From Bugula neritina (lineage: Eukaryota > Animalia > Bryozoa): a DNA stretch of 64,000 nt. The notes under the pieces were generated by a model. The model made no database searches. It was given only the letters and a program-made list of their open reading frames with translations, and had not been told where the DNA came from. Positions 9,741 through 25,998 of this stretch are shown here, piece by piece. Each line of letters opens with the position of its first letter. Within the stretch, counting starts at the first letter, position 1. The DNA lies in contig OZ037765.1 of NCBI GenBank assembly GCA_964035545.1, forward strand, positions 30,565,504 through 30,629,503, in the 5' to 3' direction. The position numbers were made by a program, and so were the translations under genes.

Positions 9741-12700
9741 CTAAGTGACTTTAATGAAATGCAGTAACCCATGAGTACCCCCACACAGCAGCCAACCATG
9801 GCTTCTTTTATTCGGGTTCAAAGAAACCTACAAAGAAAGAGATCTGAAGTAACACATCAATCACAGCATTACTTACATAGATACAACACCTAAATTAACT
9901 GCTCTGCAACACTGAGAGCAAATTATCTCAAGATGCAATCAAAGTACTAACATCTCCATCTATATAATGCTTTCTAGCCAATCCTCTTCCAGGATTAAAA
10001 CATATCAGCAAATCAAACAACATTCCACAAAGTACTGAAAAAGGACAAGGGAATAAAATTCCCTCTATTACATTATAATGGAAATATACATCTATTTTCA
10101 TTGCCAACTGTTGAAGGATACAATTACTCCATCGATATTATATAAAAAGTAAATACAATAAACTAGTGCTATATTCAAGAAATGGCACACAAGGTACGTA
10201 CAGTATTGATAGCAGCTTCTTGATTATTAGTCATGAGGAGTTTCATGCTCTCTGAGGTAATGCCTGCTTTAGCATCAGATTGTCGAATGTGCTGTAATAC
10301 ATAGTAATATATACTACACAGTATTATATACACTATATAGTATTATATATACTACAAAGTATTATATACTACATAGTATTATATATACTACACAGTATTA
10401 TATACTACACAGTATTATATACTACACAGTATTATATACTACATAGTATTATATACTACACAGTATTATATACTACATAGTATTATATACTACATAGTAT
10501 TATATACTACATAGTATTATATATACTACACAGTATTATATACACTACACAGTATTATATACACTTCATAGTATTATATATACTATACATGGTATTACAT
10601 ACACTACATAGTATTATATACATTTCATAGTATTATATACTACATAGTATTATATACTACATAGTATTATACACTACATAGTATTATATACTACATAGTA
10701 TTATATACATTACATAGTATTATATACTACACAGTATTATATACTACATAGTATTATACACTACATAGTATTATATACTACATAGTATTATATACATTAC
10801 ATAGTATCATATACACTATATAGTATTATATACACTTCATAGTATTATATATACTATACATGGTATTACATACACTACATAGTATTATATACATTTCATA
10901 GTATTATATACACTACATAGTATTATAGACTGAGAGACAACTTACAGTTTTACTCATATACTGAAAATCCCACAGCTTTCCAGAATCATCTAAAGTTGAT
11001 ATTTTAGAACTGAGAGCCAACTGCAAGCAAAACATTCAGGTTTGCAGCAAACTAAACTCTGTGGTATATAGCCATGAATATGTACAGTAAATATATCATG
11101 TAGAATATACAATACAAAATACGAAACACTGAATGCCAAAAGTTGAATTAAAATTCCTTACAAGCAGAAAGAACTTATCAGGCAAGGTGACAGCTGTTTG
11201 ATGAATGCTGACAGGATGTACAGAAGGTTAGAAGGTCAAATATATGAGAATGTTAGGATATGGATATTAATAATATATGATGTATATAGCAGTGTATACT
11301 ATTTAAACTTTAAAGTTTGTATTTTTTCCAAGTGGCGGAAGCAGATTTATTTCCTTCACCTTGAATTTTTAGACATACAAGTACATATTAGCCTACATTA
11401 AACAGAAATAATATGTATCTTATTCATTTTGATCTAATTTATGTTTTACTAAATTTTTCTGTCAAATCTAATCAATTATAAATAGATTAAAACAATTTTT
11501 ATCTATGATAATTAACCTGTGTACAAAATTGAATCCTCACACCAACCCACAATTCATAAATACTATATAACAGGCTGATAACCTTATTATTAATTAAGAT
11601 GCAATCATAAATAAATTTAATTTATGAATGTTGCTTCAATGAGCTAAGAGATAATAAGAGAGAAACGGAAACAGCTATGTAGAGAGTAGAGGTAGTAGTA
11701 ATATTAGTCTGCTTACGTGATTGGTCAGTTCTCTGTCTGCCTTCTTGATGAACTTTGGTAAGATAGGATTGTGCATTCCGACTGTCCCACTAGAGTCACA
11801 GACTACCAGCGTGTTGGAGCAGTCACACAGATCCACATCCTGTTGAAGAGAATACCAGAATAGAAAGTGGCAAATGGCAAATAGAAAGTGGCAAATGGCA
11901 AGTGACAAATGGCAAGTAGCAAATTTAAAATTAGAAATTATATCTACACAAAATTAAATGTATAGTATGTATAATATATACTACAATATATGCATAATAT
12001 ATGTGAATAATATACAATATATGCATGATATATTATATAACATATATAAAGTATAGTACGATATTTGTATAATATAACATAGTGCAATAAGTAATAAGTA
12101 TATGTATATGTATAAAATTATGAAATGTATGTAAAACATATGCATACTATTTAATATGTACGTGTATGTAAAAATATTTAGTGAAACAGGTGTATAATAA
12201 TAATTTCTTGCTTGTTGACGAGTTGAGGCAAGCAGTGAGATTTTAAGCTAATCAAGTATAAACTCTGACGGTTTCAGGCCACGAGCATCATTTACAAACA
12301 GAAATTATTCCAACACATAATTTCTGCACTCATTACATAACTAGAGCTGTAAGTATAAACCCAGCACAACTTACCAATGAGTAAACAAGACACAACTTAC
12401 CAATGAGTACACAATACACAACTTACCAATGAGTAAAGAAGACAACTTACCACTGAGTAAACAAGACACAACTTACCAATGAGTAAACAAGACAACTTAC
12501 CAATGAGTACACAAGACATAACTTACCAATGAGTAAACAAGACCCATTATGGGAGCCTTCTGATTGGCTTGGATTAGCTCATAACCAAGGGGCGACAGAG
12601 TGAGTGGGGGAGAACTGTAATGAACCAAGGAGTGCAGGCTACAGGTTTTCATCCAATAGTTGATTAGTCAACTTTACATATGAAAAATAGACGCTAACCT

Positions 12701-15700
12701 TAAAACTTAAAGCACCGGTGATCAATAAAACCCTTGTTTCAGCCGCTAATCAAAGTTCTTGAGCTATGACTGATTACACTTTTCTCAATAACTGAGAACT
12801 ATTATTTTAAAAACTTCTGACCCACCTAGAATCGAGTCTCAGACTTATAACTTACAAGTGAGCTAACCATTACACTGTAGGGGCTACTGGGGATTCACAA
12901 CACCACAATTATCCAGACTTTCAGAAGAACACTCGGAACTGTCACTGAACAGTTACCCTGAGTTATATAACTATACTGAAACCATAACCTGGTGGCTATG
13001 AACTACTTACCCAAAGCTAGAATCTGTGCAGGAGATAACCACGTGGTATAAGCTCGGCCACACAGCTTTAGTGTGCAGGTCTATAGAGCAGTCAACAGTT
13101 TTGGGGGTGAAGTATGGGGAACTCAAGTCTTTGATATCCCACACGTACCTAGTAACGAGGATCATAAGGCTAATAACAAGTATAAGTATTAGAAACCTTA
13201 ACGTTGGTTACAAACCAACATGAAATAGACCTAATAGTTATGGCTTTATGTTCAGATTTCTAGAATACAACTACGCAGCAGTATATGACTACACTGTTAT
13301 TACAATGTGTATATATTTAAAGGAGCTGCAAGAATTTTACTGTAAGCTAAATATTAATAGCATTGGCGTCTGCTGAGTAAATGCCTGCCAACGAAAGTAT
13401 AACAAAATACAGTTTCATATAATAAAGTAGAGCAGTACACACTATATAATACAGTATCATGTGACACTTACCAGCCATGGCAGAAGGTGGAGAATAGGTC
13501 CGGGAGGAAGGGACACCATCTAACAGCAGTGACAATAGAATCGGGAGTTTTAAATACTTTGATAGGTTGAAGGGTGTAGGAGCTGACCTCCCCTCCAATA
13601 TACCAAACAGCCACAGAACCTAAGCGGGTAAAAAAGAGCAGTTATTACAAATACTGGTTCAGTTTAAATCATGGAAACAGAAGCTTAAAGGAGTGAATTG
13701 CATTGCAAGAGAAGTAACTCCCGTTAACACTATTTTCCGTTTATCATGCACAGCTAATCCAGTTTCTCTGCTTACAAATCTGTAGAAAATTAAGTTACTT
13801 TGGTTTTGTTTATTACTGTTTGATGTGGATTACATGAGTTAAAATATTGACGACTATGATGCTTTACAGTATTTGAAGCATTATTATAGAGGAGATAGGA
13901 CAATCCCAAATATTGTACCTGTAGCCTAACAACAAGTAAGTTGTTTTTTATTTAATAAATTTGTAGAATTTTCCTGAGTGGTACAAAGAGAATAATTTTA
14001 AACAATAAATTTCCGCACACTAGCTACTAACATAGTGGACATGGATATATGCTTGACAGAAACAAGTGGTGAGTTTTTAATTGTCGAAAAGTCATAGGTA
14101 GTAAAGGTCATATGTAGTAAAGGTCATAGGTAGTAAAGGTCATATGTAGTAAAGGTCATAGGTAGTAAAGGTTATAGGTGGTAAAGGTCATAGGTAGTAA
14201 AGGTCATAGGTAGTAAAGGTCATATGTAGTAAAGGTCATAGGTAGTAAAGGTCATAGGTAGTAAAGGTCATATGTAGTAAAGGTCATAGGTAGTAAAGGT
14301 CATAGGTAGTAAAGGTCATATGTAGTAAAGGTCATATGTAGTAAAGGTCATATGTAGTAAAGGTCATAGGTAGTAATGGTCATACAGGCTGGCAAGATTT
14401 ACAATTGATTCGCTAAATAAAGACATAAACACGGGCTTTCCATGTACCGATCTCAGATCGATCTTACTGAAATCGATCTGAGAAATGTGCTCAGATCGAT
14501 CGTTTTTCCATGAGAGTGTCAGATCGATCTCGCGAAGTTGCCTCCTCTTAAGTGAAGGATATTTTAAAAGTATATTTTGTTTACCTATTTGAGTGATTAA
14601 AGCTACTACTGTTGAAAACAAGATGGTCCTAGTCTAAAATTTAATCCCAGCTATAAACTATACGCAGCAAAGCTTTCAGTGTATGGTAATTTGGCCAATT
14701 TAAAATAATTAATTTTAATTTTTTAGCTTGACGGCTTATATAAAATTAATGGCTGTCTTGCAGATTATTAATAAACTTACAGGACTGTTAGGCTTAAAAT
14801 TACAAAGAAAATAGCTAATGAAACCAAGTTTTAATAGTCATTTAAATTCAATTTAAATTCTCCCATTTTTTTACCTTCTACTGCATATAATTGAGTTTTC
14901 TTAATGATTGTATTGAAAGTCAAAGTTTTGGCATCTGAAAAGGTGGCTATCATAATTATTAAATACTTTGCTTAGCAATTATCAATAAGTTATCATATTT
15001 ATTAGCAGACAACACTGTAGCGAGCAGTCTTTTTCTACTTCTCAGATCGATCTAGCGTCTTTCCATGGTCTTATTGACATGAGATGGATCTGAGTTCGAG
15101 CTCCACAGACCGACCAGCTCAGATCGATGGAGATCGATCTTTAGCGTCTTTCCATGGATCGATCTCGCTGAGATCGGTACATGGAAAGGCGGTGAAATAA
15201 AATTATAAATGAATCACACCCACACAACAGCTACCTATACACAATAGGAACCACTGTGCTATATAATTACGTAAACTTTACCGGGGACCAATCAGAATGC
15301 TAACAGAACCGAGTAGTGAGTGAACAGGTCTTACCATCAGCAAAGCCAGCCACAACCATCTTAGTATCTTGTCTCTGCCAGTCCACTGATGTGCACTCAT
15401 CCGTGTTACCTGAAACAATACCAACACACCTGGTGAGTGATTCAGTACACTCCTATATAACCAGGTACTAGTACTGATACTATTATTTGTACAAGTACTA
15501 GTATTATTAATATCATCAGTACTAATACTATTAATATCATTGGTACCAGTACTAATACCAGTACCAGTACTAGTACTAGTACTAGTAATAGTACTAGTAC
15601 TGATACTAATACTAGTACCGGTGATACTAATAGTACTAGTACTAATGATATTGCCAATACTTAATCTAGATACCAAACTAATAAAATTTCAGCTTTTTGC

Positions 15701-18700
15701 TGCTTCACACTACTCTTGTATAGCTACTAGCATGTGGTGGGACTGAAGAGGTAAACAACAAAGTATAATGTTTATTTTAATGGCAACAATTATGCTTGAC
15801 TGCTTAATTAACTAGTTAGTTTTGACTGAACGGGCCAAGAAAACAGTCTCAGTAAGAGTATCATAGCACTAGACGTTAAAATAATACTGCTGACTACTCA
15901 ATACTTAGAAATACTATGCAATGTACTAAAAGGTACAGTATATATTAGTTCTTCATAGGAGTTGTCTGCCTTTACATAATAAACATATGGAGCAGAGCTT
16001 TAGATTATCTACTAAAAAAAAATCCAACAGTGTTGTCTCACCATTGACAGAAAGGTTGAGAGATTCAACTAGGCTGTAATCAGCAACTCCAGCTGAAAGC
16101 TTATTTGGGGCCATGAAAGGTACACTGCAACAAATACAGAAACAGTGAAGAAAACGAAAATAGTAGGGGAAAACAGACACATTACATTCTTATAATAACA
16201 ATGTATCATAGTTTAGTCAAAGTGGATTGTTTAATAGTGTTTATGGTTGCTATTCCACTAGAATTAATACTTTATATATAGCTTGACTTCGAAACCAATT
16301 TCTTGAAGTGAAACAGATGTTTAGAAAACTTCATGACAAGTAAAGATGATTCTGAAATAAATCATACCAATCAAGTAAAAGAATACGAAGAATACCTGGC
16401 GATATGTACAGAACCATCTGAGCAAGCCAACGCAAGCAGCCCAAGTCGGTCCATGTGACCCTGCAGTGAGAGATGACAGACCAATTATAACCGCTGACAC
16501 ATGCATTACTTACACTATTTATACTTATTTCCTAAGCAGTTGATAAGAAGCAGCCGTGGTCTAGAGGTTAGAGCGTTTGCCTATTAAACACGAAGTCATG
16601 GATTCGAAACCCGACATAGGTCATTGGTGATGTTAGGAAGAGCATCCAGTCATAATTGCGCCTGTGCCCCATATGAATAAGTCCTTAGCTCAATTTAACA
16701 AAAACCCTTTCCACCAGGGTTTCTCACAGGGATGATGATTAGAAATTTGCGTGAGGTTTTTTATAGGTAACTCAGTTTTAGTGTCAGAATAGGTATAAAA
16801 GGTGAGCAATTTCACACAGTATACAGAATATTCTCATCATATGAAAATATACCTGGAGAGAAGGTATAAATCCGCCATCGTAAGCCCATCTCATCTGATT
16901 AATGCGGCCATAACTGTGTACCAAGTTCATAGAAAGGTCCACTTTAATTTGTTTTTTACTTCTAAGATATATAAACATATAGCTGATACCTTGGCAGCAA
17001 TGATAGTGAGTTATCACAGTGCAGGCTTCAAACTTAGTAATACTATATCACACTCCTGTTTAAACAGTAAACCCACTAGTGAAATTAATACAACAGTACT
17101 CAATGCATTAGATAAGGTCTGTTGCGTTAAAATTCAAAATGTTTATTTTACTTAACATTATTCCCTCATTTCTTTTGCTAGTTATAAAACTTATAAAAGT
17201 TTCAATTTGGAAATTTTCTAACAAATCATGTTTAAAGGCCTGGCCTCACGCTCGTGGCAATCACACGAAACTAATGTGACGATTTTCGTGAGTTATCCTC
17301 TCGTTATGACCAGCCACACACTAGTCGGACGAAATACATAATAAATAGTCCGTTAATGAGTCTTGCACGAGATACAAACAGTAGAACATAGCCAAACAGA
17401 GAAACGTGGTAGAAATGAAATAATTACTGTTGCTAAAATTCTATTGACCAATCAAATGGTGCTTATCATTGATTGTAATTTTTCGTCCATCGTCTTCGTT
17501 GTGTACACCTAACGAAAACGACTTCATTTGAATTCCTTCAAATTTTCTCGTACGACTGTGTTTTCGTGTCAAATAGACGATTTCGTGTGATTCTCACGAG
17601 TGTGTAGCCAGGCCTTTAGTTTTTTATCCCACCTCAGAAACATATTTCAAAAATATAATAAACAAAAGTCTTTTAGTGACATGAACAAAAAAGTGCAACA
17701 TTTGAAAGTAGAAAATATTAGCTTACTCATTAAGATTCTGTACTTTCCAAATAGAAAGTGAGGAAGGGGGACAACTACTGGGTTGTGTTGAGTTAGCCTC
17801 AGCTCCTTCACTGTTCAGTACGACAGCAAAGAATTCGCCATCACAGAGATCTTTAGACGAAGAGGGAAGGGGGCACCAACTGATCATCTTTACAGGTTTT
17901 CCAATATATGAGAGAAATCCATCTACAGTAGCAAAAGATATACTACATACATGTAAGTATACACTGCATAAGTATACACTACATCAGTATACACTACATC
18001 AGTATACACTATACAGTATACACTACATCAGTATACACTATACAGTATACACTGTATCAGTATACACTGTATCAGTATAAGTATACATACTTTTAGAAAA
18101 TAAGCACACTGTTGCAAGTTTAATTTTTTCAGATTTCCAATATACACAGTTTTCAATCATACATTCATTCAAGTAAATGATATTTGGTAGATGACTTACT
18201 AATTGACTAGGATAAATATGAATCGCCTCAAAGCAATATAAATCACTAACTACTGCCCAAATTATTCACTCCAAACTCAGCAGTAAAAATGTGCTATACT
18301 GTGTACAAGACAGATGAAAAATGTGCTATACTGTGTACAAGACAGATGAAAAATGTGCTATACTGTGTACAAGACAGATAACAAATGTGCTATACTGTGT
18401 ACAAGACAGATAACAAATGTGCTATACTGTGTACAAGACAGATAACAAATATGCTACACTGTGTACAAGACAGATAACAAATGTGCTACACTGTGTACAA
18501 GACAGACAACAAATGTGCTACACTGTGTACAAGACAGATAACAAATGTGCTACACTGTGTACAAGACAGATAACAAATGTGCTACACTGTGTACAAGACA
18601 GATAACAAATGTGCTACACTGTGTACAAGACAGATAACAAATGTGCTACACTGTGTACAAGACAGATAACAAATGTGCTACACTGTGTAGAAGACAGATA

Positions 18701-21700
18701 ACAAATGTGCTACACTGTGTACAAGACAGATAACAAACCCGAGTGAGAAGTTACTTCACAAAACTTCAAGCTTTGGACTTCTGCTGAAGAATTTAGAGTA
18801 AAACTTGGACTAGTGCTGGTTGTTTCCTGGGCTTCAACTCTACAACAATTGAACTCCATAGTCACACTGTCACCAGGTAGTACCATACACTGATACAAAC
18901 ATCACAAGATATTATATACATAGGCTGGAGGACACCTTTATAATAATATTATATTCATTAATTGTTATTTAGTTTATCAATTGTTATTTATTTTATTAAT
19001 TTTTATATATTATATTAATTGTTATCTATTTTATTAATTTTTATATATTACATTAGTTATTATTAATTATATTAATTGTTATTCCTTTTATTAATTCTTA
19101 TATATTATATTAATTGAAATTTATTTTATTAATTGCCATTCAATCTATTTTAGTTAAGAATATAGCTTAACAGAAGGAAATTTTCCAAAATCAAGCTACT
19201 ATTCAAATATTTTATTCACGTTTGAGGAATCTCGGTTACATTATATTTGACAATACAAGTTACTAACTTCTTGTAAGACAAACACTCTTTAGTAGGTAGA
19301 AGTTTGGGCAGAATAAGCTTCTCAGATATATGCCGGGATTTACAGACGTTATATCTGGGAAAGGTATAAGGGAAGTCATAACTGAGATATGGATTGCCTT
19401 TGCACTCTCTGCCACTGTGTTTTCTTCTACCACTTGTATCTAAAGAACACCAAGTTAGCAGAATGTTAGCTCTGCTAACCTAATATAAATGAGAGTATGT
19501 AGACCAGTATATCAGAGGGATTTGCACTTCATGGCAACTATTGGGATTAAGTTAGTTTCACTTTCAGTACAATAATTCATCACAAATAAAAATGTGCCCA
19601 TGTGATTTTCCATAATTTTAGCTATTAACAAAAAAATTATTCATTGTAAATAGTGCTGGCGTACATAATGTAAGGAAACAAACAAAATTTTAAAATTATG
19701 TTGGCTTTTGCCATATATCATAGTTTTTTTTTAAAAACATCGTACTTCAACGTATACTATCTCACGCCAAAACATTAAACATATTAATTTAGTTTCAAAG
19801 AGTTGAAAGCAAGCCTGAGTACCTTCTTCTTCGTCCGTCTCACTCACGGAACCGCTCTCGTCCTCAGTAGGATCTCCGCTACTTATGTCGTCATCTGACT
19901 CCACCTGACCGTCAGATCTGTATTCTTCGTCTTCATTTCTCCGCCGCCTTTTTTTCTGAGCAACAGAAAGAGTTTATGCAACTAAATGTGAGTGGTTGGT
20001 AACATTACTACTGCCAGGTAACTTTGAAGGTCAGTACTTCACACTTGATACAACTAATTAGTTTCAAAAGCAACAGATGAACAGTTTGAATAGCTGAAAC
20101 TGTAAAAGAGAGGGGGAAGATCAGACTAAAACAAAAGTAATATTCTACGAAATGCCAACAGTTTGAGAGAGTTAGAAATCAAAATGTATGCATGTCAAAG
20201 TACACAAAATTAATATTGTTAGCTATACGTTATATGATAAAAAATACTATGGGATAATAAGGGGCTTACACATTTGAAGCATCAAGCCATGAGGTAGGGT
20301 TTATGAGGGTTCACTGCCAAGCAGATTGGTGCAGCTAGGGTTCAAACCCCACCAATTTTATATTATTTTATTTACCACAAAAATATCCAAATCACAAGCT
20401 AAAAATATTAAAAACAGAGAGTTTACGAAATGCAATCATCTGTCAATTTGCCAAAATATTTCAGTTCAAATTTGGTAATTTTATAAAATAATAATGCACA
20501 ATATTCCGGTGTAATATTCATACCCCTTTGTGAGACTTGACGTGACTCAGAGCTTCATTCTCACAGCTAAACTTCTCTGGACACCGTTTACAGTTCCACG
20601 TGTGGCTGTTCAGCCCATTGTGTGTACAAGTCCAGTAGTGCTGAGTAATCTCTGTGATATCTTTTAGGTGAACGTCGCAGCCCTAGAAATTAATAGGGAA
20701 GATATATGCTTTGTAAACAACTAGGACTTGTATATTATATTACTATGGTGAGTCAACTGGTATATTATATTACTATGACGAGTCAACTGGTATATTATAT
20801 TACTATGGTGAGTTGATTTGTATATTATATTACTATGATGAGTCAATTTAAACAAGATAAAAGACATTTCGAAAAAAGACTTTGACACAACTGAAATGTA
20901 TGCAACTAAACTCAACAGAAGGGGTAGCTGTTCCTCAACTAATTAGAGCTAGTTGAGCACAAGAAAAAGAAGTTGTTTAGATGTTCTAGACTCTAGTATA
21001 ACTACAACTATGACTCCAAGTCTATCATATCACCTCATGTTTACAATGGAGCACTTCTCCCTTTTCTGAAGCACGTTTCCATTGCTCAACAACCTCTTCA
21101 GGTGGTACGGTCATCTGAGGGGTCGAGTACAAGTCTTTCCAATTGACCTCTTCTTTCTCATCAGTCAAATCCTTAATCACTCTCCTGGCTCTACAGATTA
21201 AATAAGTTTCCGTTTAACCAGTGCCTGTACAACTATTCTCAAATAGTTTAAAATTTCAAAAATATTAAGCTATAATAAACATGTTTGGTGCAAAAAAGTA
21301 CTGTGGATAATAATAGATGCTGCGAGGTACATGCACCAGAGTGACCTTGTTATCCTACTTCCTGTCACTCCAGTTACTATGGTTACTGAGGGTTATATAT
21401 ATTATATAGAGGACTGCCTAATCAAAACCAGAATCCATAATTTTTCAGTAACAGAGTGTCTGCTACTGAATTTATCTTGATACTCACTTAAAAATAATAA
21501 GTCGGAAATTAAAGGTTCAATTCTTAGTAACATATAATAAAGATAATATAATAAAATAATATACAAACATAAGAAACATAAAATTTCTCAATTTCTTTTC
21601 ATATTTGAAGAACATATCAGAAATTGGAAGAATTTGTGAAAACTATATTTACAAGCCGCACACAAAGTGATTCCTGGCTGCCAGAGAGGGAGAAAAGCAG

Positions 21701-24700
21701 CTACTTACTTGGCTGCTGCTTTTCGTTTTTTAGACATCGAGGAGGAAGATTTCTGTTCCTTTGGTTTCTCTTTTTCCTCTGTCTGCTGAGCCTCCAACAT
21801 CTCCTGCCTCTTCCTGCACGAGACGTCATGGAGATGCTTCCAGAATGCTGACACATTTTTTAGGCAGAGTTCACACCGCACCTTCGCGTCCTACAGCACA
21901 TTTCATAACTATATAAATGGTTCATAACTATTAATGACTATATGAATGATTTAGCATCTCTCAGTACTGCAAGAGCCTAACATTGGCTTTATTTAAAGCT
22001 ACGAGAAGCATCATATATATTAATAGTATAGTAAAAGGTACAATGTGCTATATATACACATATTGTAAATCTTATGATAAAAAAGAAGTCAATAATCTAA
22101 AATGGCCATTTGGACCAAAAGTTTTTTTATTAAAAACATAATGCATTGCTGATTAAGATATACACAAAAGCCATCTGAAATTGATAGTAAATTTAACTAA
22201 CAATTTAATATGTCTCTTTCACTACAAATGACCAATTAAATAATTTTTCAAGATTCTAAAGTTTTTATCATAGTCTACATTGTATAGAACTGATGTACCA
22301 TACATAACTAAGCTTCATGACAATTTTAATATATTCTGTTATACATTATACATATATACCTTATTCTAAGTTATTAGCTAATTGTACAACTACATTACAT
22401 TACAAATAATGCTGAGTTAATATAGTTGCAACTTAGAAGTTAAAAGTTATTTAAAGAAGACAACTTCCAATGATCTATGTGTTTAGCAGACTATAAAATT
22501 AGACGAGTTTTATATCAAAACATCATTTAGCAAAGTGTAGAACAGCTTTGTACTCACTCTGTCAGATTTACAAAGCTGAACATGTTGTTTATAATAAGCA
22601 GGAGTTCTGATGGCCTTATTACAGTTTGAGCAGGTCAGTTTACCACCCAGTAAAGTGGAGACTTTCTTGAGAGACTTTAGGTCATCAGTTCCTTCGGGGG
22701 TTGACTTTGAGTACTGAAAGATATGGGCAGACGTGTTGGTTATGATATACACTTTGCGGTAAGAAAAGATTTATCATTTGAAATTATATAATTTATAATT
22801 AATTTGGAATTTCAGCCAGGTGTGAAATAATGAGGAGCATAACATGCTACCAGTAGGATTTTCAACACCAACCTCTAGAAAAAGAAGGGTGAATAAAGAG
22901 CGTTTTAAAAGCACCACACTAAAGTATAGCATGAATTATACAACTATGAGTAAAAATGCTACCACAGCAGGTTAGTTTAGCAGAGGTAGCTTGTGGAATG
23001 CAAGCTCAGCAAAAATCACTTTTCTAATCATAGTTTGTAGAGTGTAGAGTGAGTTATTCTTTTTTAAAGTTACTAAATTGGACTAATAGTAGATAAATGC
23101 TCACTTTACACTGCTAACTGGCATCTAAATTTCTTTACCTTATAAATAATATCAAGTTTCTAAATAAAGTTGTACAGAAGGAAAATTGGAATTGTCTTCA
23201 ATCGCAAATGGTAAATTTTGTCAAAATCTAAACAGGATAAAATGTAACTGAAAAATGATACATTACTAGCAGTATGTGGGCGCTGGCATAGTGGAACTTC
23301 ATCTTTGCAAAGTTTTCTTCAGTAAAGTCACAATGCTGGCACTGTAATATCTACAAAGATAAACTTAGACTATAATACTTAAAAAACCTATAGACGAGTG
23401 ACAATAAGTTATGATTCGAAACAGACAAATCAGTCGGCAGCAAGCAGCATTTTTCAGATACTTTCTACAACAAACCTTGTTTTCTTCTTTCCCATCTTTT
23501 TCGTCTTTGGATGTTATATATTTCTTCTTTCCGGCTTTTCTTTTACCTTTTGATACCTGATACAAACAGACTCAAGTTACAGCAAAAAAGAGCAAGCAAT
23601 CACAGCATTTTTTCTATATGATTTATGAAACAGTAATAATCTAATTTGTTGTTAAAAGTAGTTCATAGCTTATAGAAACAATCACAAAGTTCTGTAAAAA
23701 ATTGAGTAGTGATATGAATGCAGTAGTATTACTAACATTATTAGACTTGTCTGGTTCTTCTTCTTCAGATTCTGACTTCACTCGAAGTGATTTTCTTCCT
23801 CGTTTCTTTGATGGTTTGTCTTCTAATTTCTACGAATATTATAAATTCAGGAAAATATTTCATATATCATTAAAAACAAATTAGATAGGATGTGGAAAAT
23901 ATTATGCATGAGAGACAAGATTTTTAGGAATTGCTCAGATTTAGAGAGAACAAAAGCAGTAAGCTAATGCCATCTAGCATTTTTCATATACTTAGATAGT
24001 TCATGAAAGTTTACTGAAGATAAAAAGTAAAAAAGATAACAAAAACAAAACTCATGATGCAGAGTGAGAATAGCTGTCCCATTAATCCATTATGCAAAGT
24101 TGTGTATTAACTCAACACCAATAAAACATGACTTGGCCATATTTGGTCTTTTACATTGTACAAAATATTTATAAAATAAGCAAAACAAATGTTGGTCAGA
24201 CTTAATAAATTCAGAGCTCCATAATGAAATAGCAAAAACGCTAGAAGATTGAGTGACATTACTAGAACACCTAAGGCTAAATTTTCTAGAATGATCTTGA
24301 GTCACTATAGAATGTGATAAACTAATAGCCTTATGAAAAATAAATAAACTGAATCTATTTCTCAAAACAACTTGATAAAAAGTTAACAACAATCAAAAAC
24401 AGAGAATGAAAGAAACACAGAGAATACATTGGAAGGTGGCTGAGAGAAAATGAATTGATATTTATATTAGCAGTAGAACACTTCCATGGTGGACAGATAA
24501 AAAGGGGCATATTAGTAACAATGTCTTCTACTAGAGCAAAAAATAATTAAAGAAAATATACTAGAACACTGTTAAATTATTTCTAAATGTGATTATACCC
24601 AAACAAAGTGGATATTATATACTTTATGTTGTAAAATCTGAAAATCAATAAAAAAAATCACCTAAATGAATACAAACATAGTAAAACTATACTTACATGC

Positions 24701-25998
24701 AACTTTTCCTTTTTAGTGTTCGACTTAGTTGATTTTTCCTTTGTTCCATTAGGTGACTCCTATGTAATAGATAATATCAGATACACAGAAACAATAGCAT
24801 AATAGACAATATCCTACCAAGTACTTTATACAAAACAGTAGAATGAAATTAATTAATGCCAATTAATAACTAATGTAGCATGCTCTTTAACTTCGTAACA
24901 AAAAAAAGACAAATGCAATTTGTAATGAGAAAAAAAACATTCGTTTAAAGCACTATCAGGGCATTCTTAAAGCAGAGCATTGAGTGAAGTTATTAGGTAA
25001 GATTTAGAGTATACAATTGTTTCCTAATGTCAAGAGAAATTATTGCACATACTTCTGTTGGACAAGTATCATCTACGCCACTGTTACGTAGAGGTCTTCG
25101 CCCTCGCTGTTTCTTATTAGTAGCTGAGGAAGTAACCTAAATAATATCAAAATCTCACTATTTATAACATGTCTAATAATGAGGCAACTCCAAAAAGAGA
25201 TCAACATGCATATATCAATTTAGATATTTTACTTTGACACTACATATTGTAAAATTGTGCAGTTTTATTGAATTGGATTTAATATTTTCTACTGCGGCAT
25301 TCTTAATTAAATATTTTACTTAAAATAAGTCTAACATAAAAGATAAAAGAAATTGGATAAAAGAATAATTGCTTTAACAACTCTAAGGTTGTGTAAAAAT
25401 GCTGATGGAATAAAATATAATTATAATTACAAGACTGGAATCAGTGCTTTTCAAAACTTCATCTTCTGAAGCTTTGCTACGCCTACTTGTTCGATCTTTG
25501 CTTTTGGCTTTACTAGATTCATCCTAAACACAGAAATAAAACATACTTTTCACATAACAACTGCCTTCCATTATTTACCATAATGCTTTTTATGCTGCAT
25601 AAATATTTTGGACAATCATTATGAAAATTTTGTTGAAAGTAAAGTTAATACAAAGCAAAAATAACATGGTATGAGTCAGATTTAATTGCAATAGCTGAAA
25701 GATACTATACTTTAGGTGGGAGATCGTTGGCATCATCAACTGGGAATGACTTATTACTCTTTTTGTTGGATCGTCTTGATTGCACTTCACTTGAAAGCGG
25801 TTTTTCAGTATTTGTTTGAATACATTGAGACAAAGGTTTGTCATCATCTGTAGACACATCATATGTATCTTTGTTTACTGTCTTAGATCTTTTAGGTTTC
25901 TTGGGTATATGGAATGAAGACAACGTCCCAGCAGGTTCCTTTAAATTTTGACTGTCTGAAACCTGTTTGGATTTACTTTGTTTTCTCTTGAGTGGCAT
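9741..25998 (-). CDS. GTF3C2: General transcription factor IIIC subunit 2 (TFIIIC110, WD40) with N-terminal ZNF512-like zinc fingers, ~1040 aa
   Basis: 26 minus-strand exons: 25711-25998, 25431-25523, 25053-25136, 24697-24759, 23737-23829, 23476-23556, 23267-23350, 22558-22713, 21709-21890, 21034-21190, 20524-20682, 19823-19955, 19268-19439, 18739-18839, 17727-17922, 16853-16961, 16396-16460, 16042-16124, 15335-15409, 13472-13619, 13011-13148, 12527-12614, 11717-11839, 10946-11020, 10202-10291, 9741-9827 (3123 nt, one open frame). GTF3C2 hallmarks: YIGKPVKMISWCP, RLGLLALACSDGSVHI, ECTSVDW...VAGFADGSVAVW, AINTVSLNPN...GWLLCGGTHGLL. The start codon (MPLKRK at 25998) is the least certain point. 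Confidence 0.88.
9823..9997. repeat. ~170-bp dispersed direct repeat, copy B
   Basis: Matches 4542-4702 and includes the AG acceptor (9828-9829, minus strand) of the last GTF3C2 exon. Confidence 0.92.
10297..10928. repeat. 17-20-bp quasi-palindromic minisatellite (TATACTACATAGTATTA) filling a GTF3C2 intron
   Basis: More than 30 degenerate units; the core ATACTA-CA-TAGTAT is self-complementary. Confidence 0.95.
11859..11923. repeat. Short 7/21-bp tandem repeat (AATAGAAAGTGGCAAATGGCA) next to an acceptor
   Basis: Two 21-bp units plus degenerate 7-mers AA(A/G)TGGC. Confidence 0.75.
12365..12542. repeat. 24/26-bp tandem repeat x7 spanning an exon/intron junction (duplicated splice donor)
   Basis: Unit CACAACTTACCAATGAGTAAACAAGA; on the minus strand each copy reads ...TACTCA(T/G)TG|GTAAGTT. 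Confidence 0.95.
12820..12885 (-). mobile_element. Possible degenerate tRNA-derived SINE head
   Basis: Minus strand reads GCCCCTACAGTGTAATGGTTAGC...ACTCGATTCTAGGTGGG, with A-box-like and eroded B-box-like motifs and no cloverleaf. Confidence 0.35.
14091..14384. repeat. 16-bp minisatellite (GTCATA[G/T]GTAGTAAAG) ~18 copies
   Basis: Highly regular array with two interspersed variants. Confidence 0.96.
14430..15194. mobile_element. MITE / non-autonomous DNA transposon with 27-bp TIRs and subterminal GATCGATC motifs
   Basis: Left end CACGGGCTTTCCATGTACCGATCTCAG; right end reverse-complements to CACCGCCTTTCCATGTACCGATCTCAG. AAA flanks both sides. Many AGATCGATCT motifs lie within ~150 bp of each end, and there is no transposase ORF. 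Confidence 0.85.
15466..15660. repeat. Degenerate hexamer repeat (ACTAGT/ACTAAT/ACCAGT)
   Basis: 6-bp periodicity; it produces spurious VL/TS-rich ORFs on both strands. Confidence 0.85.
16549..16660 (+). mobile_element. tRNA-derived SINE (family copy 1; may extend to ~16740)
   Basis: AGCAGCCGTGGTCTAGAGG (A box) and GGATTCGAAACCC (B-box-like), followed by the body CATTGGTGATGTTAGGAAGAGCATCCAGTCATAAT shared with the copy at 48491-48598. No acceptor stem. Confidence 0.8.
17235..17616. mobile_element. MITE, PIF/Harbinger-like termini
   Basis: Left end AAGGCCTGGCCTCACGCTCGTGGCAATCACACGAAA; right end reverse-complements to AAGGCCTGGCTACACACTCGTGAGAATCACACGAAA. TA/TWA flanks, and CACGA/TCGTG motifs internally. 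Confidence 0.85.
17952..18090. repeat. 13-15-bp tandem repeat (CAGTATACACTACAT variants)
   Basis: About 9 units containing AGTATACACT, close to the acceptor at 17923. Confidence 0.88.
18287..18737. repeat. 32-bp minisatellite ~14 copies (AAATGTGCTACACTGTGTACAAGACAGATAAC)
   Basis: Period 32 (units at 18289, 18321, ...); the array abuts the donor of exon 18739-18839. Confidence 0.97.
20731..20848. repeat. 30-bp tandem repeat x4 (TATATTATATTACTATGGTGAGTCAACTGG)
   Basis: Four aligned units at 20731, 20761, 20791 and 20821. Confidence 0.9.

Follow-up and report, generated by a model that had tools for sequence, protein, structure and literature searches.

Transcription factor IIIC (TFIIIC) is known from yeast and human. 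In both, the largest subunit reads B-box DNA through its winged-helix domains, and TFIIIC110 (GTF3C2) serves as a propeller scaffold. In the paper on the human TFIIIC structure, TFIIIC110 contains a WD40 domain only, and the zinc fingers of the tauB module are located in TFIIIC90 (PMC11811891). Pairs of an atypical C2HC finger followed by a typical C2H2 finger were described for ZNF512B, a protein also linked to the recruitment of NuRD (PMC11602157), and another report cites ZNF512 and ZNF512B as proteins that bind pericentric satellites and recruit SUV39H (PMC13537249). In the human genome, ten genes separate GTF3C2 from ZNF512, both of which fall within a single interval of 417 kb (PMC2570409). 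The locus considered here is located in a 64,000-nucleotide (nt) stretch of the bryozoan Bugula neritina genome (assembly GCA_964035545.1, contig OZ037765.1, positions 30,565,504 to 30,629,503), named below the window. Its gene, on the minus strand between positions 25998 and 9741, encodes zinc fingers and a GTF3C2-type propeller in one frame. A preliminary description of the window, made from the letters alone, had proposed a fusion of ZNF512-type fingers with GTF3C2. The background it gave, namely the C2HC and C2H2 pairing, the human linkage and the pericentric binding with SUV39H recruitment, agrees with the papers cited above.

The locus is very probably one protein-coding gene, a single-copy ortholog of GTF3C2/TFIIIC110 with five fingers placed before the propeller. 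This reading is based on the exon chain, the conservation of its frame, and orthologs from the same species name in GenBank and from scorpions, which all agree that a finger array, an acidic stretch and a GTF3C2 WD40 region follow each other in one gene, as the preliminary description had claimed.

Exon chain and coding frame

The window is AT-rich (G+C 28-39%) and contains many introns. The gene consists of 26 exons, every one with GT-AG boundaries, and runs from the start codon ATG at 25998 to the stop codon at 9743-9741. Joined, the exons give a coding sequence of 3123 nt, that is 1040 amino acids (aa), with zero internal stops; an open frame through 26 exons is far beyond chance, because in sequence this rich in A and T about 7% of random codons are stops. 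The exon boundaries were defined by anchoring the junctions on two B. neritina proteins, KAF6019585.1 and KAF6023938.1, and at the junctions anchored in this way the protein of the relative is recovered at each splice with no indels. The four junctions of the linker (20524/19955, 19823/19439, 19268/18839 and 18739/17922) each show GT...AG and a pyrimidine tract. The boundary of least certainty is the exon 2 donor (25431), since the two B. neritina GenBank models conflict at this exon. The joined model was used for frame arithmetic, motif positions and the ratio of non-synonymous to synonymous substitution rates (dN/dS), and the queries of homology searches were single exons or proteins of relatives. 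The claim of 26 canonical exons in one frame was reproduced with the same exon number, and the five finger motifs stand where they had been noticed, all in stop-free frames of the minus strand.

In the product, about 237 N-terminal residues are basic and Ser/Thr-rich and contain degenerate AT-hook-like motifs. The fingers (F1 to F5), all matching the ligand pattern C-x2-4-C ... H-x3-5-[HC], follow in the order C2H2, C2HC, C2HC, spacer, C2HC, C2H2, with a short helix ahead of F2 and of F4. They are succeeded by a linker of about 136 residues, acidic and rich in Ser/Thr apart from the KKRRRR run at its start, and the C-terminal region is the GTF3C2 WD40 beta-propeller. The exons are as follows:

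25711..25998, minus strand: exon 1, start codon and basic, Ser-rich N-terminus; 84% identical to KAF6019585.1 residues 9-112
25431..25523, minus strand: exon 2; conflict between KAF6023938.1 and KAF6019585.1, and a 1-nt deletion in B. neritina contig VXIV02002643.1
25053..25136, minus strand: exon 3, degenerate AT-hook-like motif QRGRRP; homolog-anchored junctions
24697..24759, minus strand: exon 4; homolog-anchored junctions
23737..23829, minus strand: exon 5, basic motif KKRGRKS, then an acidic run; homolog-anchored junctions
23476..23556, minus strand: exon 6, Lys-rich; homolog-anchored junctions
23267..23350, minus strand: exon 7, finger 1 (C2H2), model residues 238-259; collinear with scorpion finger 1
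22558..22713, minus strand: exon 8, pre-finger helix and finger 2 (C2HC, C-x2-C-x12-H-x3-C), the finger preceded by LKKVSTLLGGKLTC; single copy in the genome
21709..21890, minus strand: exon 9, finger 3 (C2HC; scorpions have C2H2 here), followed by a spacer rich in Lys and Glu that ends in KRKAAAK
21034..21190, minus strand: exon 10, spacer, second pre-finger helix and first half of finger 4; homolog-anchored junctions
20524..20682, minus strand: exon 11, second half of finger 4 (C2HC) and finger 5 (C2H2); 98% identical to KAF6019585.1
19823..19955, minus strand: exon 12, the basic KKRRRR run, likely a nuclear localisation signal, followed by an acidic stretch of Ser, Asp and Glu
19268..19439, minus strand: exon 13, lineage-specific linker, without match to the scorpion or Tupaia proteins
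18739..18839, minus strand: exon 14, end of the linker; its final residues align with mammalian GTF3C2 just ahead of the propeller
17727..17922, minus strand: exon 15, first WD40 blade, ISWCP motif; single copy in the genome
16853..16961, minus strand: exon 16, WD40; homolog-anchored
16396..16460, minus strand: exon 17, WD40, RLGLLALACSDG motif; 14/18 residues identical to Tupaia GTF3C2
16042..16124, minus strand: exon 18, WD40; homolog-anchored junctions
15335..15409, minus strand: exon 19, WD40; homolog-anchored junctions
13472..13619, minus strand: exon 20, WD40; homolog-anchored junctions
13011..13148, minus strand: exon 21, WD40; homolog-anchored junctions
12527..12614, minus strand: exon 22, WD40; homolog-anchored junctions
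11717..11839, minus strand: exon 23, WD40; 1-nt deletion in B. neritina contig VXIV02002643.1
10946..11020, minus strand: exon 24, WD40; homolog-anchored junctions
10202..10291, minus strand: exon 25; the interval from 10945 to 9828 contains no other in-phase AG..GT exon that is conserved; 26/30 aa identical in VXIV02002643.1
9741..9827, minus strand: exon 26, stop codon (9743-9741) and the C-terminal signature of GTF3C2, which matches residues 916-943 of Tupaia GTF3C2 and the C-termini of both scorpion proteins

The coding character of the exons was assessed by counting substitutions between the window exons and B. neritina contig VXIV02002643.1. They are distributed over codon positions 1/2/3 as 43/37/97. 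In the model frame, dN/dS is 0.46 for the N-terminus (exons 1-6), 0.21 for the fingers (exons 7-11), 0.31 for the linker (exons 12-14; a value obtained from few changes, 10 non-synonymous and 8 synonymous) and 0.21 for the WD40 region (exons 15-26), and either shifted frame gives 0.67-2.3 in any segment. Purifying selection thus acts on every segment in the model frame. The low ratios in this frame, together with the bias in codon position, indicate that the linker exons 12-14 are coding in the frame of the model.

The connection between the two halves is also visible on the side of the propeller. Exon 14 ends with residues that are already homologous to mammalian GTF3C2, and the homology continues past the 18739/17922 junction. 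Downstream of the fingers, the earliest in-frame Met is residue 628, which falls within the first blade, so that the WD40 half lacks an obvious start of its own. The finger exon 8 and the WD40 exon 15 each occur in one copy in the 216-Mb genome (321 contigs); for the ortholog, the single-copy result was obtained with one WD40 exon (15) as the query, which a very divergent paralog could escape.

Identity of the WD40 half and the GenBank ortholog

When exon 15 (query 17726-17983, minus strand) was searched against 1.8 billion representative proteins, one strong match was found, KAF6023938.1, with 85% identity over the exon at its residues 508-581. This protein (797 aa) and its cluster mate KAF6019585.1 (1010 aa) both come from B. 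neritina, both are named GTF3C2, and each holds five fingers, an acidic linker and WD40 in one chain. KAF6019585.1 matches the window exon by exon with 80-98% identity. The window and VXIV02002643.1 are collinear across the locus, with 26/26 exons present; nucleotide identity is 87-100% in exons and about 79-86% in introns, and synonymous divergence is about 0.14. The window therefore belongs to a bugulid bryozoan that is close to the B. neritina sequenced for this contig, yet distinct from it.

The region of KAF6019585.1 from residue 600 to 1010, about 92% identical to the window exons, was compared with solved structures. Its best match among them is human GTF3C2, chain C of 8CLI (E=6.5e-8), and the alignment covers 328 residues, query 34-361 against chain 390-741. 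A protein search with the same WD40 region recovered GTF3C2 of Tupaia (E=4.8e-5) and a scorpion protein. When the Tupaia and scorpion proteins were in turn compared with the window by tblastn, they matched the RLGLLALACSDG blade at 16454-16401 (14/18 identical) and the C-terminal signature SPN...GWL..GG..GL at 9827-9750 (13/28 identical). Single window exons matched no WD40 model in Pfam, and their finger matches were all below threshold; against the PDB, single exons matched generic fingers only and not GTF3C2. Single exons fail to name the WD40 half because they are too short.

The finger pattern was also sought in Tupaia GTF3C2, the sole mammalian sequence examined, and none was found. The claim that vertebrate GTF3C2 has no finger array holds for this protein, and it is in line with the human structure, in which TFIIIC110 is assigned no fingers (PMC11811891). 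Homology of the N-terminus to mammalian GTF3C2, considered for the shared motif KKRGRKS (Tupaia residue 217), was rejected, as BLASTP gave no significant match.

Several side observations concern the B. neritina contig and the introns. Compared with the window, VXIV02002643.1 lacks a single base in exon 2 and another in exon 23. These deletions probably explain the odd N-terminus and early end of KAF6023938.1, as well as a separately called downstream gene of 89 aa, and they could be a haplotig error or the mark of a degenerating allele. In the same contig, at 18629-24769, an E2 ubiquitin-conjugating gene and a MA3-domain gene follow GTF3C2. In the window, intron 14 includes a minisatellite (18297-18750) of a unit of about 32 nt repeated about 14 times, visible as repeated frames of 31 aa, and further intronic short-period arrays are located at 20726-20849, 14150-14432, 10300-10931 and about 12300-12520. 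Several short-period arrays align at multiple offsets in VXIV02002643.1, and therefore arrays are common to the window and this contig.

Counterparts in scorpions and the age of the layout

The protein XP_067122900.1 of Centruroides vittatus (1552 aa, annotated as "uncharacterized protein") contains five finger patterns in the same order upstream of WD40: a solitary C2H2 finger, then two C2HC+C2H2 pairs with a long spacer between them. XP_023227171.1 of C. sculpturatus has the same layout. In a BLASTP comparison of KAF6019585.1 with XP_067122900.1, the fingers are collinear, 5/5 (E=3e-7), and the WD40 halves align with E=1e-18. An AT-hook region lies upstream of the scorpion fingers, at residues 405-510 of XP_067122900.1 and at residues 406-510 of P0007, an open reading frame (ORF) from the Logan contigs. 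P0007 is 75% identical to the scorpion protein and runs uninterrupted for 1519 aa in a contig of 5399 nt, and AATAAA lies 38 nt before this contig ends. Ten more ORFs (P0008-P0017) belong to its cluster, nine of them full-length (1519 aa), on contigs of 4.7-5.5 kb.

The Centruroides gene is 25.4 kb long, with introns between the finger and WD40 exons; since the Logan contigs are intron-free, they behave as spliced mRNA. The collinear layout on such contigs argues that the arrangement is old in protostomes and does not result from a merge of two genes. It is common to one lophotrochozoan and one ecdysozoan and absent from the only mammalian sequence examined; the finger-WD40 fusion is thus ancient. 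At the C. vittatus locus, a THAP-domain gene was called on the opposite strand, over the whole 45 kb that hold the GTF3C2-like gene.

Relationship of the fingers to ZNF512 and ZNF512B

General Pfam finger models, tested on single fingers, all remained below cut-off. Pfam contains two models specific for ZNF512, PF21276 (ZNF512_C2HC) and PF21367 (ZNF512_zf-C2H2), each with a cut-off of 27 bits. With PF21276, neither KAF6019585.1 nor any of its finger pieces was listed at E<=10, a search in which the HMMER filters may hide very weak matches, and in a six-frame scan of the genome this model gave nothing at the locus and nothing above cut-off anywhere. PF21367 did not match the bryozoan fingers either, in direct scans or over the genome, and reached 17.9-18.6 bits (E=0.002-0.004), below cut-off, for F2 of the scorpions. 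Protein searches with the finger regions as query returned only the query itself or near relatives. A profile of the finger module compared with the PDB matched many solved finger arrays, with E down to 1e-12, and was swamped by generic tandem fingers. ZNF410, ZNF568, YY1 and others ranked far above 2CTD, the solved fragment of ZNF512, which was never the top match and whose sole HMMER alignment is out of register, C2HC against C2H2.

Predicted structure and language-model features provide another view. The AlphaFold model of the Bugula helix with F4 and F5 consists of one helix and two beta-beta-alpha units, with a mean predicted local distance difference test (pLDDT) score of 78. Foldseek comparison of this model with the PDB gave generic DNA- or RNA-bound finger arrays with weak E-values. 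A shape search of the Atlas with the same model returned ZNF512/512B in six of ten rows, including the best query template modelling (TM) score, 0.57 over 69/76 residues with the helix included. Among the named clusters of Atlas language-model features, ZNF512 occupies ranks 2-5 when the scorpion fingers are the query and rank 11 when those of Bugula are. By these features and by predicted shape, ZNF512/512B would be the nearest named family, and both kinds of match are to be taken as leads, not as statistics. As to the arrangement of fingers, scorpions have two C2HC+C2H2 pairs after the solitary C2H2; the window has one (F4-F5), and its F2 precedes a C2HC variant.

Two readings can be considered. 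It is the C2HC+C2H2 pairs of ZNF512/512B that the finger pairs resemble most, and common descent is a candidate, not an established, reading; the chances that the fingers are kin to the ZNF512 family are roughly even. The alternative accepts one fused gene and proposes that protostome GTF3C2 gained generic C2H2-type fingers independently, so that the likeness to ZNF512/512B reflects convergence or common features and no special kinship. It is supported by the failure of PF21276 and the sub-threshold score of PF21367, by the ranking of ZNF410, ZNF568 and YY1 over a misregistered 2CTD, by the generic arrays returned from the PDB by Foldseek, and by finger-region queries, which yield no word-sharing relatives. 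However, four of the five best named Atlas feature clusters for the scorpion fingers are ZNF512, ZNF512/512B predominate in the Atlas shape rows, the succession of C2HC and C2H2 without a TGEKP-type linker is the layout that defines ZNF512B and occurs twice in scorpions, and human GTF3C2 and ZNF512 are linked. A generic origin of the fingers is given somewhat less than an even chance. The claim that the fingers are ZNF512-type stands in part: ZNF512 is the nearest named Atlas family and one C2HC+C2H2 pair is present, but both Pfam ZNF512 models stay below threshold and 2CTD is never the best match.

Possible isoforms and the question of two genes

Some points weigh against the reading of the locus as one gene with a fused product. 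RNA runs for this animal were looked for and none was found; the sole run that contains words of the locus looks like DNA, with 0.83 of the mostly intronic words present. Neither B. neritina protein derives from a cDNA; both are products of gene prediction, and their models conflict near exons 2-3. The RNA nature of the Logan contigs was deduced from absent introns, not from run records, and the number of changes behind the linker ratio is small, as given above. If intron 11, which starts at 20521-20523, is retained, a stop appears one codon after exon 11 (...SHKGV, stop), and through it a finger-only isoform of about 480 aa is structurally possible. In addition, that the fingers bind nucleic acid and that the protein joins TFIIIC are predictions.

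It is conceivable, yet rather unlikely, that the gene makes a finger-only or propeller-only isoform next to the fused protein, by alternative polyadenylation or from an internal promoter, and that the modules also act separately. The stop one codon into intron 11 would suit such an isoform, as would one member of the Logan cluster with 823 aa, although this member is perhaps merely a truncated contig. That annotation merged two adjacent genes of the same strand, a ZNF512-like finger gene and GTF3C2, with linker exons that are fortuitous or non-coding, is highly improbable: the result of the RNA search, the mutually different GenBank predictions for the relative, the frame that stops just inside intron 11 and the separate human genes GTF3C2 and ZNF512 could be quoted for it, but exons 12-14 show conservation without gaps, with purifying selection confined to the model frame, the WD40 half has no in-frame Met ahead of residue 628, within the first blade, GTF3C2 homology extends from the end of exon 14 over the 18739/17922 junction, and scorpions show the same layout in a single uninterrupted ORF on intron-free contigs.

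Proposed function and origin

For the fused GTF3C2 ortholog, the function can be proposed by analogy. By orthology with the human and yeast proteins (PMC11811891), it is inferred to assemble with TFIIIC90 and TFIIIC220 into tauB and to act at B-box promoters. Its propeller would pair with the TFIIIC90 propeller and hold the winged-helix domains of TFIIIC220 on the B-box. The flexible acidic linker after the KKRRRR run would tether the fingers and AT-hook-like motifs to the propeller. Tethered in this manner, they would make direct contacts with nucleic acid and form, on the simplest view, an added binding arm. Through such contacts, promoter binding could become stronger or reach further on flanking DNA; alternatively, TFIIIC could be sent to extra sites. 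Recognition of repeats or targeting of heterochromatin by the window protein is pure conjecture.

The data would also fit an ancestral fusion that later came apart in vertebrates. In a fuller scenario, the ancestral bilaterian TFIIIC110 would have carried an AT-hook and a ZNF512-type finger module; ZNF512 and ZNF512B would have arisen by duplication and complementary domain loss, with ZNF512 still linked to GTF3C2 at 2p23.3, and protostome TFIIIC would have kept the module, coupling RNA polymerase III (Pol III) genes, extra-TFIIIC (ETC) sites or insulator sites to sequence- or repeat-specific recognition. This scenario is possible and, on balance, doubtful. To our knowledge, the fingers of ZNF512/512B have no invertebrate source described so far, and the scenario offers a testable origin for this family. 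If the proposed role of the fingers is correct, then tauB in many animals has a second built-in device for nucleic-acid binding, and the choice of Pol III genes or extra-TFIIIC sites could change. In the literature, no description of fingers in invertebrate TFIIIC110 was found, and a connection between GTF3C2 and ZNF512 was found only as neighbours in loci from genome-wide association studies. The architecture itself is present in public annotation without comment, as "GTF3C2" in B. neritina and as "uncharacterized protein" in scorpions.

Comparison with known systems

Among the closest systems is GTF3C2 of B. neritina in GenBank, an ortholog with fingers, linker and WD40 as in the window. The GenBank models are incomplete, KAF6019585.1 lacking the last two exons and KAF6023938.1 lacking more than these, and they diverge from each other at exons 2-3, whereas the window frame is complete with its 26 exons. 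The scorpion proteins share with the window the basic region with AT-hooks, the five fingers, the spacer between F3 and F4, the acidic linker and the GTF3C2 WD40. They are about 500 aa longer than the bryozoan protein and contain three canonical AT-hooks (KRGRPRK), in contrast to the degenerate bryozoan motifs QRGRRP and KKRGRKS. Their F3 is a true C2H2 finger, and their F2 and F4 have C-x4-C, while F3 of the window is C2HC.

Vertebrate ZNF512 and ZNF512B resemble the array in the C2HC finger (H-x3-C) placed directly before a second finger and in the helix ahead of the C2HC finger, as seen in the F4-F5 model. The bryozoan array differs from them in an extra leading C2H2 finger and in F3, which is C2HC; ZNF512 has no WD40, and the likeness reaches no significance at the level of sequence. 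Human GTF3C2/TFIIIC110 (yeast tau91/Tfc6; chain C of 8CLI, 8CLJ and 8CLL), a tauB subunit of TFIIIC, has the homologous propeller and, like the window protein, a long charged N-terminus that is probably disordered. What distinguishes the window protein from it are the five fingers and the AT-hook-like motifs between this N-terminus and the propeller.

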